Assembly: GCA_964106915.2 (NCBI GenBank)
Contig: OZ066916.1
Reading direction: 5' to 3' (one strand)
DNA: 64,000 bases
Source: Podarcis gaigeae
Taxonomy: Eukaryota
The notes under the pieces were generated by a model, which saw only the letters and a list, made by a program, of their open reading frames with translations, made no database searches and was not told where the DNA came from. The position numbers were made by a program, and so were the translations under genes. Positions 36,696 through 53,015 of the stretch are shown piece by piece (the stretch's first letter is position 1; the number at the start of each line of letters is the position of its first letter).

Positions 36696-36847
36696 AGTAG
36701 TTTTTGGCAATTGTAATGGTATCGCAATGGTTGATTACATCCAAAAGACCACACTTTTAAACCTTGGCACCGTTGAATTGTATGGTTCTAATGATCCTTA
36801 TAGGAGGGAACCCCGATCTCCACGTAAAAGCAGACAACCATCTGGAG
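36696..36847 (+). CDS. STXBP5: STXBP5 exon ~18 (152 nt)
   Basis: tttcag|A...G|gtaagg; VVFGNCNGIAMVDYIQKTTLLNLGTVELYGSNDPYRREPRSPRKSRQPSG. Confidence 0.96.
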
Positions 36848-37098
36848 GTAAGGTCATACACTTGATACTTGCTGATAAATTTTTGTATTGGTCTTCTACT
36901 TACCGGACCGCAAGCTGATTAGGAGTGCATGCGGCTAGCTTTTTCTTTGAAAGTAACTTGCACAAACCAAAAGGTTTATATGTTGACAATATTCTGTAGG
37001 GGCTTCTTTTTAGAAAACATCATCTGATTATGGTAGGCAAACAATCTTCATTTTAAGAGTATTCCAGACTGCCAAATTTAGCATATATAACAAGCATA

Positions 37099-37620
37099 CT
37101 TCTTCTTCTTCGTCTTCTTCTTCATCATCTTCTTCTTTATATGTTCTGTAAGCTGTGGGCAGCTTACAGAACATATAAAATCATAATAAAATGTCAAACA
37201 TTAAACATTTCCCAATACAGGGCTGCCTTCAGATGTCTTCTAAAAGTTGTGTAGTTGTTTATTTCCTTGACATGGGGGGGGGCACATTCCACAGGGAGGG
37301 TGCCACTGCCTAGAAGGCCCTCTGCCTGGTTCCCTGTAACTTTAATTCACACAGTGAAGGAACTGCCAGAAGACCCTCTGAGGAGGACCTCTGTGACTGG
37401 GCTGAGTGATGGGGATGGAGATGCTCTTTCAGGTATACTGGGCTGAGGCTGCTTAAGGCTCTAAAGGCCAGCGCCAGTACTTTGAACTGTGCTTGGAAAT
37501 GTACTGGGAGCCAGTGAAGATCCTTTAGGACCAGTGTTACATGGTTCCAGAGGCCACTCCCAGTCGCCAGTCTAGCTGCCACATTCTGTATTAGTTGTAC
37601 TTTCTGAGTCACCTTCAAAG
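37099..37620 (-). mobile_element. L2 LINE 3' fragment with (TTC)n tail
   Basis: ORF 37310-37618(-) QLIQNVAARL..LKDLHWLPVHFQAQFKVL..RQRAF is an L2 ORF2 C-terminus. Confidence 0.9.
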
Positions 37621-37984
37621 ATATAATATTCTACTTCATTACTTTTTTATACAAAAAGTGTTATTCTTTACCAAGGTTTATGTGTTCACATCAACCATCT
37701 TCCATTGTCTTGCCTTTCCCTGTTTGAGATTTACTTTTCGTCTTCCTTTCTGCTATCACACCCTGTTATCATAAATGCCCTGTTAATTTATTCTGAACTA
37801 ACTGCTTCACAGAACCACTCAGCACTTAACCCCTTCATTTTTGGACACAATTATTTCAGCATGCTGTATTTGATCTGTTAAGGTGTGTATTGGCACATGG
37901 AAGCAATCACATAAATTCAGCAAACCACAAGCCTAAAATTCTCAGAGGAGGAAGTGCATATGAACAGAAAATTTTAGAGTTGCT

Positions 37985-39440
37985 TCATACCCCTGAAGAT
38001 GTGGACAAGCTGCTTGAAGAAGTGCAGCCAACCAGCTGCCCTTTGATGCTTGCCCACCTCGACTTCTGAGAGCTAGCCGTAGATGGTTAGCTGGGTTTGC
38101 AATGAGTGATTAATGCTTCACTTGAGGAGAGGGACTGACCACCTGCCTGGAAGGACATGGTGGTGTGGCTCCTCCTTAGGAAGACATTTTTTGTCCCAGA
38201 AATGTTAAATCACTATTGCCCAGTACAAAATAACTAATTTTTGGACAACGCTTGAGAGGGTTGTGGCAGTACAGCTTTAGACATGCTTGGAAAAAACTCT
38301 TTGCTTAGATCCATTTCAGTCTTGCTTCAGGCCCAGTTATGGTACTGAAGCCACCTTGGACATCCTGGTTGATGACATTTGTCAGGAGAGAGGTGAGAAG
38401 AGTGCAAGCCAGCTCATTCTCCTTGACCTCCCACTGTCCTTCTGGATCATCTCAGGGAGGTAGGGGTTGGGGGCACTGTACTTCAGTAGTTCCAATCCTT
38501 CATCCAGGGCTGTTTCCAGAAAGTAGTTATGGGAGGCTACTGTTATGTGCCATGAGAGTTGTCCTGTGGTGTCCTGCAGTATTCTATTTTGTCCCTGGAA
38601 CATCTATATGAAGCCACTGGGAACTGCCATCAGGAAATTTGGTGTCACCAATATGCAGATGATACCCAGTTCTGTTTCTCTGTTGCGTATGAATTGGGCG
38701 AGGTAGTCAAGATGTTAGACTGATGCTTGGAGGTGGTGATGGGCTGTGTGTGAGCCAATAAACTGAATCAGAATCCTGAAAAGAAAGCAGTATTATGTGT
38801 CCCAGGTTCTTGATTCTGGGGTGTGGGGACCTGTCATGGTTTGGGTTGTACTTCCCTGGAAGTAGCATGTCCATAGCTTGGGGGTGCTACTGAATTCAGC
38901 CTTGTCATTGGAGGCTCAGTTGGCCTTGGTAACTAGGCATGCCTTTTTCCAGCTCTGGATGCTTCACCAGTTACAGTCTAATTTGCACAGAGACAACTTG
39001 GTCACAGTACTCCATGCTCTGGTAACCTCCAGCAGCCAGACTACTGACTGGGGCTCCCTTTAGAACTCACATAAGCCCTGTTCTAAAAGAGCTGCACTGG
39101 TTGCTGGTTTGTTTCTGGGCTTAGTTCATGGTGCTCACTTAGTCCCCAAATATCTGAAAGACCACCTCCTTCCCTACAGACCTTCTTGGGTGTTAAAATC
39201 AGCGAGGTTGGTAGTTCCACTGTCCTTAGAGGTCTTGGGATGTGACCTGAGATGAGAGCATTCTCTGTGTGGAATACCCTCCCCACAGAAATATATCTCT
39301 GTCACCTTCATTATACAGCTTTTTGTCATATGCTTAAAGACACCTGTTGTGAGCATAGTTTGTTTTAATCTTTTTTGAATGCTTTATTTTCTATTACCCT
39401 GGGACCTTTTAGTGTAACCAGCCCTGGGACCTTATAGTAT
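37985..39440 (+). mobile_element. L2 LINE, degraded RT region
   Basis: tatgcagatgatacccag (YADDTQ) at ~38652; LGVLLNSALSLEAQ, LVTVLHALVTS; many indels. Confidence 0.8.
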
Positions 39441-41553
39441 GCAGCAACCACAGTACACCATTCTTCCACAGGAGGAAGAATGTGAAAGAAGTAAAAGTGT
39501 AGTGAGAACATGCTTCTTCCCCCAAGTGTTTGGGGATATATGTCTCTGCTTCAAATGCCATGTTTAATGTGGCACACTTCCTGTGAAGGTCATTGGTTTA
39601 GTATTGGCTTCACCTGGTGGTTGAAGGTGGGGACAGAATATGTGGGAAGTAGGCAGCTCCTAGTTGATTCTTGCCTTTATCGAAGTAGTCACATTGCTTT
39701 TGAGCTCCTGTTCTTTCTCTTCTCAGGTTTTCTAAATTCCACTTTTTCTTATTTGTTCCAGTGTTTGCCTTCCTCTTAACTGTTTCTAAGCCACCCCATT
39801 CTCCCTTCAGTATACCAGGGCAGTATGGTTGTCACTCCTAACTTTCTCTCCTCCTTATGACTGCTCCAGCACTTTCTTCTCTCAGCCTGTCTCTTGTCAC
39901 CTGAGCCCGTCTTTCTTGGCTGTTTTCTACATTCTTTGCTGCCTGCATCTCTCCCATAAATAGAACCCCTTTGCCTTGCCTTCTTGCCTTTTCTCTCTCT
40001 CCTGATTTCACCAGTAACTGCTTCAGTGGAGGGTGGAGGCAGGTTTGTTGGTATTTGAACCTTGGCGATTCTTCTTAGCTGTTTTGGACCACTGCACCTT
40101 TTGGTTTGGTGTGTGCTATGTATCCATGCCCCAGCATTCTGGCTTTCTGAAGAGTAGGGATGGCAGTCAGTGTGCTCTCTGGTGGCAATAGCCACGCCTC
40201 CTGCCCAAACTCAGCCTTTGAATAAACTTAAAGTGCCTGCTAAGGCAGCTTTTCCTTCTTCCTCTAAATGTAAGACCTTTGCTCGGCATTTGCCTCATAA
40301 ACAAGCACTAAGCATCTCATAGGCAGCCCTTATAATAAATGGATTCATCCCTTTCCATGGATATCTGTGGACATTCTGGACCCTTAACAACATTTGCCTT
40401 CACCATTGCCTGGGCCTGATGGGTTTTATCTCTCATGACTCCCACTATTTGCCTTTGCTCTGCAATGGCCTTAGACTTCATTGCCCTCCTGCAGAACCTA
40501 CCTCAGCACCATTTAAGGGGGCATCTGTTCTTGTTGAGCCAAATTCCTTTACAAAGTCCATACCATTTCCTTCTACTTTTAAAAAAGATCCTGAAGGCAG
40601 AGAGGGACTCTGCCTCCTTGTAGTATAAAAATATGTTTCATAGTTAATTAATACTATAGTTTAGAGCCTATTAGTAGAGGTTCAGTAAACTGCTGTCTCC
40701 TTGGGCCTGGGCTTATCGTACACCGTTCCTTGATTTCTGTTCTTACCTGGGTCCTTCATAAAATCAGGGAGGAAAAGCCACAGTGGTCCTTTTAGCTTCC
40801 TTCTGGCCTTGACGTCTGTGGCCGTTGGAGATCCTGATCACGGCAGTGTATCCATGGCCCCCTCTTTGCTGTCTGGATGTCAGAACTGCCTACTTCTCAC
40901 AAGTTCTGTTCCTGCCTTTGACCATCAGATATGGAACCAATATTCAACCAATAAGATTCATCAGGCACTGAAGATCTGCTCTTCTGGTAGTAACCAATGG
41001 AACTTTTTGTGTACTTATATGCAATTATGAATTACTATAATAGCCACATGGAACACTGCAAATGTTTCAGATATAAACTGCAATATTCCATGAATTACCA
41101 TTTCGTTGTAAAACTATTTATGGCAGTTGAATAAGCAGCAATTCTGGCTCTTCCTACCTACCTTTCCTGGTAGTTCCATATTAAAGATGGTTAAATAATT
41201 GTAGTTTTATTAAAAGAATAAGTACAAGTAAGTCTGGCTATTTTATAATATTAGTAATATATTCTCTTAAATGAAACAGTTAAACAGCTGAGTAGGGATA
41301 GGTTTGTTTTGTCGTTAAATTGTTAGTAGTATTAATGGGAAATTTTATAAATATTATGTAAGACAACAAGTAAATTATATTATACTGTGTGAATTCTGGC
41401 ACATGCACGATTTGTTGTATTTCAGTTGCTGTCTAACAATTTCCCACAAATACATTGTTTTCTTGGATCTTAAAGTTTTTCTGCAGTTTTTTTTCTTTCT
41501 CCAAATATACTGTGTTGGTGTTTTTGTCTTTCCTTTCTCATTGCTTCAATAAG

Positions 41554-41637
41554 GCATGCTGGCTGTGGCTTCTTGCATGTGTGGCCTCTCTAACTTATAT
41601 TCAGAGTCTGTGAAAAAACTTCGCACCTCTTATATAA
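41554..41637 (+). CDS. STXBP5: Putative additional STXBP5 cassette exon (84 nt, phase 1-1), similar to an alternative exon of STXBP5L
   Basis: Long polypyrimidine tract, aataag|GC...A|gtaagt, open frame GMLAVASCMCGLSNLYSESVKKLRTSYI; resembles STXBP5L DNFCMRGLSNFYPDLTKRIRTSYQ (recalled). Confidence 0.8.
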
Positions 41638-42959
41638 GTAAGTCATCTCATAAGAATAAAGTGTTTTAACATCCAGTTGATTAGGTTATATGCATTCATC
41701 ACCCTGAATATTTTACCATAGCTTTTACTTTTCAGCTTCTTTCACTAACATATCGGCAGAGATTAATTCTATATTAATATAATTATAGATTGTTACCTGA
41801 GATACTATCAATATGGAATATTGAGTACAATAAGATCCAGATTACATCCTTCATCTATTTTGCAAGCAACAGTAAAAGAAGTGGCATTAGTAGATAATAG
41901 AATACAAGTCACAAATGTGCAGTGGTGCCCACAAATGTGTGCAATGGTGTCCACAAAGACCTTCATTGGTGCCCTTGGACAAAGGACCAAGACTCTGAAC
42001 TTTCCTTTTTATTTTTAATAAAAAAGGAAATCTCTAACCCTCCTGGAAAGAAAGTTATGAAGCAAAAATATACAGGTACCCTTCTAAGCAATTTCTGTGA
42101 AACGAGCTAGCCTGGCTGCCTCTGTCAGTGCTTTTTAGCCAGCGAGTGAAGTCAGAGCTGTGATTGTTGAGTGTGTTGTATTAAAGTTTGATAAAGGTAT
42201 TACAGTTAATTTATTAATCACCTTCTAAACCACTGTCTCAAGGTGATTTACATATAAAATAATTTAAAATGGTTAAAAACACAAAAACAAATCAATTTAA
42301 AACAAACCTAAAACTTGATATAAAGACCCATTTATCCAGCTGGAAAAGCCTTCTGTTTCTCCTTTCCATTTAGTGCACTTTTCCTGCTTGTCTTATTTGC
42401 TAGTAGTCCCTGGAGTCTTCGAAGTTTATCCTTCCTTTTTTCCTAGTGACCAGGATGCATCTTTCTTGTGGTGGGTTCTCCTGCGATCAGATACTGCCTA
42501 GAAGTTATTTTCTGCAAATACTTCTACACAATAAGTGTGGGTGAATTTTAAAGTATCCCCTCCCTAAATGGCAAAATTCAAAATGTGAACTTTGCAAAAG
42601 AGGCTTAGGTGTGCCTCCTGCTGTGCTGGACTTAAAGCCAGGCACTCATTAAGAATTCACTGTATAGTTAAATTATGATACAATATTATACATGCCGTAC
42701 GTTTCATTCAAGTAAAAGTGACCTTAACTGTTCTTGGGGTGCAAGTGCAGACATGTCTGAACTACAAAGGTGTAATTGCAAATGGCAGGGTAGAAGATGA
42801 CCCATTAGGGTGTGTACTGGCCCCAGTATTGTACTGTGCATTTCTTAAAATTTCTATCTCTCTGTGTTGGTCTGTGGTCTCTGGATTAATCTGTAATTCA
42901 GGTTTTAAGCAGCTCTGTAAAATTAAGCTCTCTGTTCTCTCTTCGCTATGGAGGGTAAT

Positions 42960-43660
42960 GGAGGGCAATGCAATTCATTGGTTCTGTTCCTGCTTCTAGG
43001 GCTGTTTCCAGAGAGTAGTTTGGGGAGGACCATTGTTTGGCACCATGTGAGTGGAGCTGTAGGTTTCATCTTGCCCTCCATGCTATGTAACATCTATCTG
43101 AAAATACTGGGAGCTCTCATCAGGGGTTTTGATGTGAGGTGTCACCAATATGTGGGTGCTAGACCAATGCTTGGAGGCAATAATGGGTGGGATTGGCCCA
43201 ATAAGTTGAAGGTGAATCCTGAAAGCACAGGTATTATGTGTTCTAAGTTTTTGAGTTCGGGATGTGGGGGGCATGGCGTGTTCTGCACAGCTTGGGAGGG
43301 GAGGATAGTCCAGGATCCAGTATTGTCATTTGAGGCTCAGTTGTCCTTGATACTTAGATATACCTCTTTCCAGCTTTGACTGGTTTACAGCTATAGCCCC
43401 TTATGAACTGATAGCATGATCATCATACTCCATCCACTGATAACTTCCAGGCTGGATTATTGCAATATACTCAATGTGAAGCTGCCTTTGAAGATGACTT
43501 GGAAACTGCAACTGGTCCAAAATACAATAGCCAGGTTACTGGGATTTCATTTAGAACACACCTCTTTACTCTGGCCTTTGATACCTGAGATACATATTTT
43601 AGATGTAATCTGTTTTAACTGTTTTTAACAAGGGCCTTATGGTGAATGGTGTATAATAAT
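42960..43660 (+). mobile_element. L2 LINE, degraded
   Basis: NIYLKILG..NKLKVNP..DPVLSFEAQ and LITSRLDYCN..KLQLVQN..ARLL. Confidence 0.8.
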
Positions 43661-45122
43661 AATAACTAATATTATAATAGGAAATCTAAAAATGGAAATA
43701 ACCTTTCCCACTTTTGGCCAAAGTGGATATGATTTACAGGCACAGGAGCCAATCTGGATTTAAGGCTGCCAAACTACAAACAAATTGTTGGCTTTTTTGT
43801 GGGGGAAATTAAAAGGTTTTACTTTTCTCTGTAATCCATATTAGGGTGATACCTTTATTAGGCCATTTAAAACTCCCAGATCCATACATTTAACATTTTG
43901 GGGGGAATGGGAGCTCTTTGTCAGGAATACTTTTGCTTCTCTTTTTTTCACCACACCAACTTTTCCAATGCTTGTGTGTATCCTCTCATAGGTTTTACAG
44001 ATCTCTGATAGGTCTTCCAGCATGAAGCTGCCTGTGGAGTTCTGAAGAGTTCTAGATATTAAAGTAGAATTATGTAGTTTTATTTATAACTAACACACAC
44101 ACACTATATATATAGAGAGAGAGGGAGAGAGTGTTAAGAAAGCCTCCACTCCTGTGATTTTACAAAGAAAATCAAGAGCTCTTCAGTGCCTAGCAAGCAA
44201 CATTATGGACAACCTTGTTTATTGCAAAGCCCATGGACCTAGAGAAACCTAGAACTATAAGATAACAAACGACAGATTGACATGAGGCTTTGTGAGGCTT
44301 TGTAATTCTGCCTTTCAGTGTCATCTTTACACTTCAACACCTTTCATAACAGCATCTCCTTCCAAAGCGGCCCAATCATTTCATCATCTGTAGTGATGCC
44401 TGTTGTTGCTACTTCGGTTTTGTATTGGATACAGTGCTTTCTTTATCCTTATCAATGGTCTAGATGCCAAAATCACATGTTGACTATCACTTTGATTGAG
44501 CAAGAGTTCCAAGCAACCACCACAGTCCTGGATTTTTCATCACCATGGTGTTTTCTGAAATTAGTGGTTTCTTGGGTCTAGAAGGGCACAGGTTATCAAA
44601 TAGATCAATATATTTGAAGTATGTATTTTTAGGCCTTTCTTCAAAATTTGATCTGTTTTGACGACAGTGGTAGGCAAATACTTAAACATGTTAAATATTA
44701 CTAATTCTAGCTTGCTTTTATGGTCTATGGTGGTTTTTAAATGTAATTTATTTGTCCTTACATGTTCATTCTTATATTCAACTTGGTTACCTTTCTTTGT
44801 AATATACCTGTTTACAATACAGGTAATTTTCCATTAATTTTGCATTAATCACATATATTACATAGAAAAATCACATTGAAAAATGGCTTTCATGCACATC
44901 TATACCAACTCCCCTTTTCCCTGAATCTTCATAATCATCCTGTTCCCCAAAGAAGAAACACTGATACTTTGAACAGCAAAACTCTTAGTTAAAAATATAA
45001 TTAAGTATCGGATTTGATTGTTTCCCCAGTGGGCACAAAAATACCTTATGTGTCATGTTTGTGTCAAGAATTAGAAGTGGTCCACAGCTGTTGAAACCTG
45101 TTGTGTTCTTTGTATTTTACAG

Positions 45123-45188
45123 CAGGTCTTTGTGATATTAATGAAGGTACAGCTGTACAAGAGGATCGTTGCAAGTCACCCACCTCAG
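45123..45188 (+). CDS. STXBP5: STXBP5 exon ~19 (66 nt; NAGNAG alternative start at 45126)
   Basis: ttacag|CAG GT...G|gtaatg; AGLCDINEGTAVQEDRCKSPTS. Confidence 0.95.
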
Positions 45189-46153: not shown

Positions 46154-47155
46154 TAATTTGCTGAACCCAATCATGAATCTGACTTGGGTAAGGGAGGAGA
46201 GTGCCTCCCATCACTAGAAGAGAATGAATGTAATATTTCCAAGGAATTCAGCAAGTATTCTTATTGAAAGTAGTAGTTCCTGATATAATTCGTATATCAT
46301 TTTTATTTTCATCTGTACCATGTTGGTATGCATAGAGAAGGGAGGGAAGGTTTTTTATGTTCTTAGTTAAAACATGATAAATATATGTATGTAGAAAACT
46401 ATTTACAAAATTCACTTTTACAGGTAAACAAAGGATGTTATTTCCAATTAGTTTTTAAAGTAATTAATAGCAAAACAACCACACTTCAAATCTTTTCACT
46501 TTTGGATTGAAATACAGAGAATTGGCAAAAGTAGCTGTATTTTCATTTGTTATCACAGAGATAAGTGCACTGGAACACACCTTAGACCTTAATGAAGCTA
46601 TTTCTTCTGAATTATTTTGGCAATATTGATAATACAAAAATTGACATTTAAAATGTGAACTAGAATCCCTGCTATTATTATCATGTGAATATTTTTGTTA
46701 ATCTGAACACAAGCAACCTTTCCAGACTGTTTTGTTTCCCGTTTCCCAATTCCCATCAGAAAATCTGTATCTTCTATGCTTTCCTTTGGTTGTGTGGTCT
46801 CATCTGTACTAGAAAATTGTAGCACCAGCATAAGTTCGAAAAATTAAAGCTGTGTATGATGAAAGTGAAACACGGAAGACGCAAAAGTTATCTGTCTCAA
46901 ATGTAGATGTCCTTACGCATAAAGCAGGAGATATAGGTGAATACTCCCTCTTTTTTTGCAGGAAAAAAGCCTGAAATTATAAATCATCCATAATACCCAA
47001 AGAGGTGTTTATTTAGGTGTTTATTGTTGCATATGATACGGATTAGGATATATAGTCTTTCTCATTTTGTCATCTGTCGTAATTTTTTTGTATGCATCCT
47101 TTTTTGTTAATATCCATTTCGTATGTCCCTTTCATTCTTATCTTCACTCATTTAG

Positions 47156-47215
47156 GTTCTGGTTCTCCCAACAATTCTGATGATGATCAAAAAATGAATA
47201 ATTTTATAGAAAAGG
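47156..47215 (+). CDS. STXBP5: STXBP5 exon ~20 (60 nt, alternative; b-tomosyn insert part 1)
   Basis: atttag|GT...G|gtatag; GSGSPNNSDDDQKMNNFIEK. Confidence 0.93.
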
Positions 47216-47309
47216 GTATAGTATTTTTATTTTTAAGAGAATTATCATAAATTTTCATTAGCTCATATTTTTAGTAAATTGACATTTTGTATTGAAATAT
47301 TATTTGCAG

Positions 47310-47357
47310 TGAAGACCAAAAGCAGAAAGTTTTCCAAGATGGTAGCCAATGATATAG
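47310..47357 (+). CDS. STXBP5: STXBP5 exon ~21 (48 nt, alternative; b-tomosyn insert part 2)
   Basis: ttgcag|TG...G|gtagga; VKTKSRKFSKMVANDI; with the previous exon gives the 36-aa b-isoform insert. Confidence 0.93.
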
Positions 47358-50300
47358 GTAGGAACTAGAAAAATTCTCCTTTGCTCCTTACCTGGGACCT
47401 TATTCTATGCAGCGCTTAACTCTGCAGCAAAACAAAGCAAGCTGCATTATATTTGTTAAATTAATATTCTCCTAACCATAAGTGGTGTTCCTTTGGGCTG
47501 CTTCTCTGCTAATATACTGTGCTCAATTATTAACACAATCCAAGAGACTGGGCTCTTAATTTTCTCTAATTGTATATGCACATCCTTCTACAAAGGTTTT
47601 GGTTTCTATTCAGAAATACTGAAAGGGTTCAATCCTATGAGCATTGCCGTATAAAATGGTTTTAACATAGGTTCTCAAAGTGTTAATGCTAATTCTGAAA
47701 TGCAGAAGCAATGGTTTTAGCTTCTTGGGAATAAAGTACATAACATTTTAATTCATGTATTTCAGCAATAAGTGTATTCTCTCTGAATCCTTGTTGCTAA
47801 CTGATCTTTGATCACTGACAATTAAATTGCAAATTACTTACCAAGTTTGCAGTATGTGCATAAGGTGGATTGAACCCTTCTGTTGTAAGAACATAAGAAA
47901 TAACCTTATTGCTTGGATATGGTTGTTCTGCTTTTTATTTTAGAGTATATCTGTTAAACCTATTGGTCATCTGTTTGAATGGAAATTAAATTACTTAGCA
48001 GACTTCCTCCCATTTGTCATTATTTCTATCTAATTATTTATTTGTAGTGAGATTTTACTAATTATGTGTAACAATATATATTTCACAGTAACCACAGTGG
48101 CTTATCTCTCTTCTAAATTTGCATATTTACAGCATGTTGTCTAATTGTTATTTTCTTGATCATGTTTCTTCTTTAATATCTTCAGTTTATCACAACATTC
48201 GGTGTCAAAGGGAATTTTATAGATTTAGTTTTAATGTGTTGAAACAATCAACATATCTGTTAATCTGCAAGTTGTGTGCAAGTCACTACAAATTAAGTAC
48301 TTCTCTTCCATTGTTACGCTTCCTGTGTCAACAGGATTGGCTTCTAGGATACTGTGATGCCCATTCTATGTGCTGCTTTCATTCAAATGTCAAGAGAGCA
48401 ATGAGGTATCCAGCCACAAAGAAGTCACAGCCATACTGCTCTAGTATGGTTGGGAAATAAAACCAGAAGCTTCTCAAATTAAGGAAGTTTCTACTTGCTG
48501 TCTTTTGGCTTAATTTAGTAGCAGAGTAAAAAGGAAATGACGGGGAGATTCACTCTCACAAAAACTGTCACCCACAAGCAGTTCCATGATTAAAGGAAGC
48601 ACCTGTATAATGTGTAACTAACCAACCAGCCTGTGTGGCATGGTGCATAAGTGTCTATAAAAAGAATCCTAGAAGATGCCACAAATTTATTGATGTGTGC
48701 TAGATATGCTAGTCAAAAGTATTAGGTTCATTTTCAGAGACAAACTGTGGATGGAGATGGATGCTGCCATCATGCCACTAGTTCTCCAGCTGTGTTACTT
48801 CATGATATGCATGACACACCTGTATGCAGCACCAGTTACCTCCAGGTAAAAATCTGCTGCTTTGCCATTGTGTGCAGTCAAAAGAGAAAAAGAAATAACA
48901 AAGGAGGGAGAGAAACTGAAGGTTTGCCTCACAACTCCACCAGCACCCAGGGACACGAGTGGCATTGGTTGGTCTGCTACATTAAATGGCAGTGATTGAT
49001 ACTGGCAAGAAAAGATTACTTCCCTCCTCTCTCCGTTTGAGATGCTAGCCTATCTCTTACCAGTCAAGGTGTATGTGCATACAATATCCATATGGCACAT
49101 GTGCCTTACCAAACATCCTATCACCGTGAGATAGTGGCAAAGCTAAATCCAAGGAAGAGCAACCTGTAGTTCAGACTCTGCTCTAATTGAGACACAAAGG
49201 TTAGAACAATGTGAGCACTTTATCTTCAAAGTGACTAGTGAAAATGTCTGACTTGGTTACAGAAGATTCTAACTTCTGGATGAATGAGGGAACAGAAGAC
49301 CATTGACCTCTGGAATAAATCCACCATAAGGCTCTGCATGGATGCAATAGGACAAAGAAAATCTTTGGCAAATTACCACTTTTGAAAGTAGCCTCTGCTA
49401 TGTCCAGTTGCAGTCAGTAGTAGTATTCTGCTGTTTGCTGAAGCAGCAGAAAGACTTCAAAGAGTGTAATCTTAGTTACTCTGTATACAAAGAGGGGGTA
49501 TATTATCAGAGGGCTCCTAGAGGTTAAGTCTGGCTCATGACAATTATTCATACTTTTTTATCAGCTTTATCTTAAGATAAGACAGAATAGCAGTCTTGCA
49601 GACTTCCTTTGGACAGTCCAGGAAGTTTGTCATGCTCCTTCTACAGGTATTCAGATTATCCAGGACTTGTGCAAGATTTACCCCTAGGCAGGTGATCTGT
49701 TCCTCCAGCCCCTGCACCTCCTGGGTAGGCAGTCTGTTCCCCACCCCGTGAACCTATGGTGCAAGCAGCAGCAGATGGCTGCCAGCTGGAGGAAGGATGC
49801 TGCAGAGCCATCCATTTAAGTGAGAGGACCTTGGGGGGGAACCAATTGTTCTGGACCAGGTGAGCTGCTTCCTGGGTAGGCTCAGTATTCTTGCTTTAAC
49901 AGTCTAGGCACTGAAAGGAGATGTAATGTGCCAGGTAACTCTGTGGTGGGCACAATATTTCCGAAATTTGATCTACTTTGACTTTAAGGACCTCATTTTT
50001 CAGTGCCAGGCTGGGCAGCTCTGCAGTGGCTGGCATCCTTTTTTCTCTGGGCCTCACCCAACATAGCAAGGATATATTTGGAGGAGACTCAAAGGCACAC
50101 AAAGATTCAGCTGTTTGGCTTGCAGAAATGAAAAAAGCATACAAAGAACGTTAAAATTATTGTTATTTTAAGATGATATATCTCAATTTTGTGTTGAACA
50201 GAATTCATGCAACATAAAAAGAGATAAATAATAAAGTAAGCAGAAAATAAACCCACAGCAATAGAAGAGAGTTGCCAGGGGAAATAAGTATTAGTTTCCC

Positions 50301-52964: not shown

Positions 52965-53015
52965 CAAAGATGTCTAGAAAATTAAGCTTACCAACTGAAC
53001 TGAAACCTGAGTTAG
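52965..53015 (+). CDS. STXBP5: STXBP5 exon ~22 (51 nt, alternative; absent from s-tomosyn)
   Basis: tttcag|CA...G|gtaagt; AKMSRKLSLPTELKPEL (17 aa), contains RKLS PKA motif and LKPE SUMO consensus. Confidence 0.94.

Follow-up and report, generated by a model that had tools for sequence, protein, structure and literature searches.

Introduction

Three isoforms of tomosyn-1 (STXBP5) and four of tomosyn-2 (STXBP5L) have been described (PMC3188574), and elsewhere the tomosyns are counted as "at least seven" (PMC5529015). In the papers that we searched, three tomosyn-1 isoforms are counted, and the m form is the one used in rescue experiments. The hypervariable loop of tomosyn-1 contains a PKA site (S724) and a SUMO site (K730) that tune the inhibition of secretion (PMC3948876).

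In tomosyn-2, a 72-nt exon of mouse Stxbp5l has been measured by RT-PCR as a cassette exon, with an inclusion (PSI) of 35% in wild-type brain that changes to 43% in the T-STAR knockout (PMC3636136, Dataset S1). A different Stxbp5l exon of 171 nt is regulated by T-STAR/SLM2, its PSI rising from 62 to 92% in the knockout (PMC3636136, Dataset S1), and is the subject of further papers (PMC5199341, PMC11077083).

Here we analysed a window of 64 kb from the lizard Podarcis gaigeae, that is, the whole stretch of DNA to which all coordinates refer and which contains no N. A first-pass annotation, made from the letters alone, had pointed to a hidden 84-nt cassette exon in STXBP5 resembling an alternative exon of STXBP5L. 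Very probably, this exon represents an ancient STXBP5 cassette in its squamate form, one that keeps the reading frame, is mostly skipped and predates the split from STXBP5L; a four-step mechanism is proposed for it below.

Results

The window holds the middle of STXBP5 on the plus (+) strand, on which all features named here lie. In an exon-by-exon tblastn comparison, the exons flanking the candidate showed 75-100% identity to squamate and bird STXBP5 versus 56-76% to squirrel STXBP5L. The upstream exon at 36696-36847 (152 nt, phase 2-1), which ends where the hypervariable loop starts, was 82-92% identical to vertebrate STXBP5 and 56-62% identical to STXBP5L. Because the flanking exons are nearer to STXBP5 than to STXBP5L, the host gene is, judged by sequence comparison, STXBP5. 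Further downstream, two more exons of the hypervariable region at approximately 47155-47214 and 47309-47365 (tblastn coordinates) make up a b-type segment (47155-47365), and the exon at 52965-53015 contains the known PKA and SUMO sites of the m and b isoforms (PMC3948876). A cichlid STXBP5L (P0047) has a counterpart of this last exon, so more than one hypervariable exon is older than the gene duplication.

The candidate exon at 41554-41637 is 84 nt long, a length divisible by 3, and is directly preceded by TAAG (41550-41553) and directly followed by GTAAGTCAT. Upstream of it lies a pyrimidine-rich tract (41461-41549), with 83% pyrimidines in the last 30 nt and 72% across 90 nt before the acceptor, and 65 nt (41487-41551) are free of any AG. 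The acceptor (41539-41553) is weak, whereas the donor (41638-41646) has the consensus GTAAGT(CA). In the frame fixed by the upstream exon, the 84 nt contain no stop and encode a peptide of 28 residues. Acceptor, donor, pyrimidine tract, length, absence of a stop and peptide were thus all as the first-pass annotation had described them. Its statement that the exon is phase 1-1 like all its neighbours is true of the two flanking introns and of the exon downstream, but the upstream exon is phase 2-1. Likewise, with the exon included, the downstream junction reads T-GLCD or S-LCD rather than A-GLCD, depending on whether the downstream exon (45123-45188) is entered at position 45123 or at 45126 of its tandem CAGCAG acceptor. 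Given the phase 1 end of the upstream exon and either start of the downstream one (45123 or 45126), inclusion adds 28 codons and no stop.

When the 8.3-kb intron (36848-45122) was scanned for splice-site pairs of the form AG...GTRAGT that enclose 30-200 nt, preserve the frame, are stop-free and follow at least 75% pyrimidines, the exon at 41554-41637 was the sole candidate returned. In a branch-point search, the best consensus lay 117 nt upstream of the acceptor with two AGs in between, and no branch point could be placed. Taken on its sequence features and its relatives described below, 41554-41637 is a real optional, frame-preserving exon of STXBP5.

Rays, gar, sturgeon, bichir, teleosts, amphibians, birds, squamates and placentals all have predicted STXBP5 isoforms with the same insert at the same junction; these are computational NCBI or UniRef models that were retrieved by a search with the upstream exon, by further homolog searches and by cluster look-ups. 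The exon is therefore neither hidden, as had been claimed, nor a mere survivor in lizard tomosyn-1, as mouse, rat, gerbil, marmoset, goat and whales have predicted isoforms that contain it; the accompanying guess that predicted isoform models may already hold it was borne out in many vertebrates.

Identity to the 28 residues of the window insert was 21-22 in rays, 26 in gar, 24 in sturgeon, 25 in bichir and 18 in two teleosts. Among amphibians, 25 residues were identical in newt and 24 in the frogs Xenopus and Leptodactylus, and the inserts of many birds shared 25-27 residues with the lizard. The lizards Anolis sagrei, Phrynosoma and Hemicordylus each reached 25/28 and snakes 18-20/28. In elapid and colubroid snakes (P0310, P0314), the insert has retained its Cys-Met core, while its basic C-terminal half has eroded. 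Placental inserts were identical at 20-21 of 28 positions (mouse, rat, gerbil, Arvicanthis, marmoset X6, goat and four cetaceans), the rodent carriers including mouse X2 (XP_036012002.1) and X9 and rat X11 (XP_063131071.1). The tammar wallaby isoform X5 (P0266, XP_072499766.1) has a longer, degenerate insert with 12/28 identical residues, which suggests, at the level of sequence, that the exon decayed in marsupials while placentals retained it. Across 28 distinct peptides, eight of the 28 positions (C, M, L, Y, S, S, K and S) were invariant.

The closest predicted carriers include mouse X2, rat X11, Anolis sagrei X1 (XP_067322247.1), Hemicordylus X10 (XP_053147482.1), crow X1 (XP_039424435.1) and gar X6/X23. 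All have the same exon, the same junctions and the same two downstream acceptors, and they differ from the window exon by species-level substitutions only (identity 20-27/28). Both downstream junctions, T-GLCD and S-LCD, are used together with the cassette in predicted isoforms, which matches the prediction for the window. Independently of the cassette, the tandem CAGCAG at 45120-45125 yields two forms, one residue apart, in predicted isoforms from rays to birds, and both the 45123-type and the 45126-type form occur with and without the cassette. The Anolis models (P0291, P0355) differ from the window in an extra 19-residue segment just 5′ of the cassette. When lizard copies of the extra loop segments of Anolis, gar or cetaceans were sought, no match was obtained in the intron of the window.

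Skipping isoforms are predicted alongside inclusion isoforms in the same species, for example in gar, orca, newt, sturgeon and Anolis. In general, alternative RefSeq isoforms rest on aligned transcript evidence. None of the full-length Logan transcript-assembly proteins among the matches contained the exon, and the RefSeq isoform sets of bichir and bowfin are without it, in contrast to GenBank models from those genera; inclusion is therefore probably low or restricted. In runs of a close relative that resemble RNA, 9-12% of the words sampled from 41300-41900 were present, where the exon alone would give 9.5%, an indirect observation that fits a spliced exon; in DNA-like runs, 57-100% of the sampled words were present. 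The toothfish insert as a lone query retrieved only itself, as few words were shared and the length window excluded full-length proteins.

In genomic DNA, the exon was located in paddlefish (L003) and toothfish (L001), in both with an AAG acceptor and with the donor A/GTAAGTCA of the window (the slash marks the exon end). Window and paddlefish are 83% identical across 134 nt, reaching approximately 25 nt into each intron, and the paddlefish exon has a 6-nt deletion that retains the frame. At shared degenerate residues, 17 of 20 codons of the cassette are identical between window and paddlefish versus 20/39, 10/17 and 7/16 in three neighbouring exons, and 12 of 17 between window and toothfish versus 6/28 in the neighbours. 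In the 15 nt before the acceptor, 13 positions are identical to paddlefish versus seven of 15 for both neighbouring exons. The flank comparisons rest on the paddlefish, toothfish and anchovy loci, and the comparison of synonymous sites and flanks on small counts from two species; within this range, the raised conservation of synonymous sites and splice flanks is of the kind that regulated alternative exons commonly have. In the comparison with anchovy STXBP5L, eight of the 14 shared degenerate codons differ synonymously with the residue retained, which argues for selection on the protein.

No trace of the cassette was found in the gap-free stxbp5a-type intron of Hoplias (L004:5849-11888), and it is possible, judging from this one genomic locus, that one teleost duplicate lost the cassette. 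Separately, we noted that in eel, tarpon and milkfish none of the stxbp5a isoforms listed carries it and that a second, faster-evolving teleost STXBP5 copy keeps it (toothfish L001:12747-12830, and glassfish).

At the equivalent position, a segment of 23-24 residues is present in squirrel STXBP5L (P0042) and in an anchovy protein (P0057); its core is identical to the window insert at 12 of 20 and 15 of 20 positions, respectively. The alignment scores of 67 (squirrel) and 80 (anchovy) compare with shuffle maxima of 38 and 46, and none of 20,000 shuffles reached the observed score, so that the pairwise alignment that had been suggested as a check in the first pass proved significant for both species. 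In a phylogenetic tree built from the 300 residues before the loop, with three rows lacking the anchor omitted and the window sequence not included, the squirrel and anchovy carriers fell into the STXBP5L clade (96/89), apart from the STXBP5 carriers, which formed a weak clade (83/66). The anchovy STXBP5L locus (L002) has the same phase and donor as the window exon; the donor A/GTAAGTCA is invariant across four loci and reads A/GTAAGT in mouse Stxbp5l.

The 72-nt STXBP5L exon, which we take to be the exon that distinguishes isoform xb from b, thus agrees with the window exon in intron position, phase 1-1, the donor A/GTAAGT, a TGCATG at Cys-Met and in being alternatively spliced. It differs in that its acceptor lies approximately 12 nt further downstream, which results in 24 codons instead of 28, in that it lacks the second Cys, and in that its inclusion has been measured in mouse, whereas that of the STXBP5 copy is only predicted. 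In anchovy and mouse, the GCATG that opens the lizard exon (41554-41558) lies just 5′ of the STXBP5L acceptor; it is not kept in paddlefish or toothfish STXBP5. Position, phase, donor and a similarity above that of 20,000 shuffles support, as sequence evidence, that the 84-nt STXBP5 exon and the 72-nt STXBP5L exon are paralogous. Because of this paralogy, the exon is very probably older than the STXBP5/STXBP5L duplication, as the first-pass annotation had inferred, and one ancestral cassette retained by both genes is the simplest history.

In a profile search, no homolog of the insert was found in the invertebrate-type or outgroup tomosyns among 150 representatives. A long-branch tomosyn near the STXBP5L clade (P0064) has, at the same place, a few residues like the start of the STXBP5L insert; it could be a jawless-fish copy, which would date the exon. 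In the anchovy STXBP5L contig (L002:38869-43126), parts of one exon are repeated in tandem approximately 25 times, probably as an assembly artefact, and these repeats corrupt the P0057 model 3′ of the cassette. The Stxbp5l exon 22/23/24 that is repressed by SLM2/T-STAR and Sam68 is likewise a regulated cassette in the hypervariable region of a tomosyn; the window exon was ruled out as its counterpart because that target is the unrelated 171-nt exon.

The invariant Cys-Met is encoded by TGCATG (41574-41579) in the window, a candidate Rbfox-type splicing element by its motif, and the same hexamer occurs at Cys-Met in each of the five DNA copies, namely those of the window, paddlefish and toothfish and those of anchovy STXBP5L and mouse Stxbp5l. 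TGCATG is the Rbfox consensus and, by the known position rules, usually represses inclusion when it lies inside an exon. Because the hexamer leaves only one synonymous site and occurs 27 times in the 64 kb, we treat it as a lead only. No paper in the literature searched links Rbfox to the candidate tomosyn-1 exon. A neural microexon of the SRRM4 type was excluded by the length of 84 nt versus a limit of 27-30 nt; a UGC of the SRRM4 type is present near the acceptor in the window, but paddlefish has TGGC.

In the mechanism that we propose, the strong donor, the weak AAG acceptor and phase 1-1 allow, as sequence and comparison show, inclusion or skipping without a change of frame. RNA elements in and beside the exon would govern inclusion, the best candidate being the TGCATG, which is predicted to repress it.

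In the AlphaFold model of a bird isoform, the insert (residues 695-722) lies inside a loop with pLDDT < 30 (681-819), so that the model shows it within the disordered hypervariable loop of approximately 140 residues in the second beta-propeller. Inclusion would accordingly place 28 additional residues at the start of the disordered loop, with the WD40 core and the SNARE tail predicted to be unchanged. The exons that distinguish the b, m and s forms of tomosyn-1 are similar to the window exon in that they are phase 1-1 modules of the same disordered loop, the loop with the PKA and SUMO sites, and are skipped combinatorially, but the window exon lies upstream of them and outside the three described tomosyn-1 isoforms (PMC3188574).

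As the last step, the insert may provide a docking or phosphorylation site in the form of a short linear regulatory motif, a reading of its motifs to which we give somewhat less than an even chance. Such a motif would consist of the conserved C-M-x-x-L-S-x-L-Y-S core and the basic K[KR]xRxS end; the basic end is conserved in STXBP5 and STXBP5L, and the core and the terminal Ser are common to both paralogs. The insert would then tune the strength or the place of the restraint on SNARE-driven secretion, in the way of the PKA and SUMO sites that follow later in the loop.

Discussion

Several other explanations were weighed against an ancient cassette that both tomosyn genes retained. AT-rich introns yield short exon-like stretches randomly, but the probability of a chance pseudo-exon, or of a convergent likeness to STXBP5L, is practically nil in view of the 26/28 identity to gar, the conservation that reaches rays, the intron position, phase and donor common to both paralogs and the failure of every shuffle to attain the paralog score. 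A real exon confined to lizards or sauropsids, whose loss in mammals would account for a tomosyn-1 repertoire limited to the b, m and s forms, agrees with the three tomosyn-1 isoforms in the papers (PMC3188574, PMC3948876), with mammalian copies that are more diverged (20-21/28) than those of birds (26-27/28) and with the degenerate wallaby copy; it is scarcely credible given the in-frame copies with the invariant core that are predicted in mouse, rat, gerbil, Arvicanthis, marmoset, goat and four cetaceans. The unusual conservation of synonymous sites and flanks, together with the seeming rarity of inclusion, would also be expected if the stretch were conserved mainly as an RNA element, that is, as a decoy or regulatory exon for the neighbouring hypervariable exons, with the peptide as a rare by-product. 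We regard this as very unlikely because the frame is retained in every copy, even with the 6-nt deletion in paddlefish, because the synonymous differences from anchovy STXBP5L leave the residues intact, and because the paralog is included at 35% in mouse brain (PMC3636136).

A special case of the linear-motif step is that the insert is a lipid anchor, in which palmitoylation of the CxC motif and the basic stretch would tether the isoform to vesicle or plasma membranes. The first Cys is invariant and the second is present in 26 of the 28 STXBP5 peptides, a hydrophobic N-terminal third is followed by the basic end, and tomosyns have no membrane anchor yet ride on vesicles (PMC5529015). However, STXBP5L has Arg and teleost STXBP5 has Ser in place of the second Cys, so that this Cys is not conserved wherever the exon occurs, which leaves the palmitoylation motif suggested in the first pass with little in its favour, and the overlapping TGCATG may be what holds the first Cys. 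A strong amphipathic helix was rejected with a helical hydrophobic moment of only 0.4-0.5, vesicle targeting occurs without loop 2 and in isoforms without the insert (PMC5529015), and tomosyn palmitoylation did not appear in the titles or abstracts of the literature searched. A lipid anchor is therefore unlikely in our judgement.

With the ancient cassette as the preferred reading, automated annotation already includes the tomosyn-1 exon, which seems not to have been studied and whose function is only proposed. No paper on a tomosyn-1 isoform carrying the insert was found among the openly readable papers searched. For gene annotation little is added because the exon is already part of predicted isoforms in many vertebrates. 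Specialists on tomosyn gain a cheap and useful lead, namely a fourth optional exon in the mouse and rat models that has been under selection since before the split of tomosyn-1 and tomosyn-2. We regard the cassette as conserved and soundly supported but ordinary, with a modest appeal to specialists and no new kind of mechanism.

A more speculative extension, which we think rather improbable as a whole, is that vertebrate neurons, including those of rodents, make an overlooked xb-type tomosyn-1 in which the insert is a conserved lipidation or docking motif, switched on by a splicing element at the Cys-Met codons that is shared with tomosyn-2. If true, a neuronal xb-type tomosyn-1 would be an unrecognised isoform class beyond the "seven tomosyns" and would offer a new handle on how the brake that tomosyn puts on vesicle fusion is tuned by cell type.

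As a minor observation on the intron, two diverged copies (73-79%) of a dispersed repeat, at 38471-38967 and 42963-43388, lie in the same orientation approximately 4.4 kb apart and flank the cassette; they are probably old transposon fragments.
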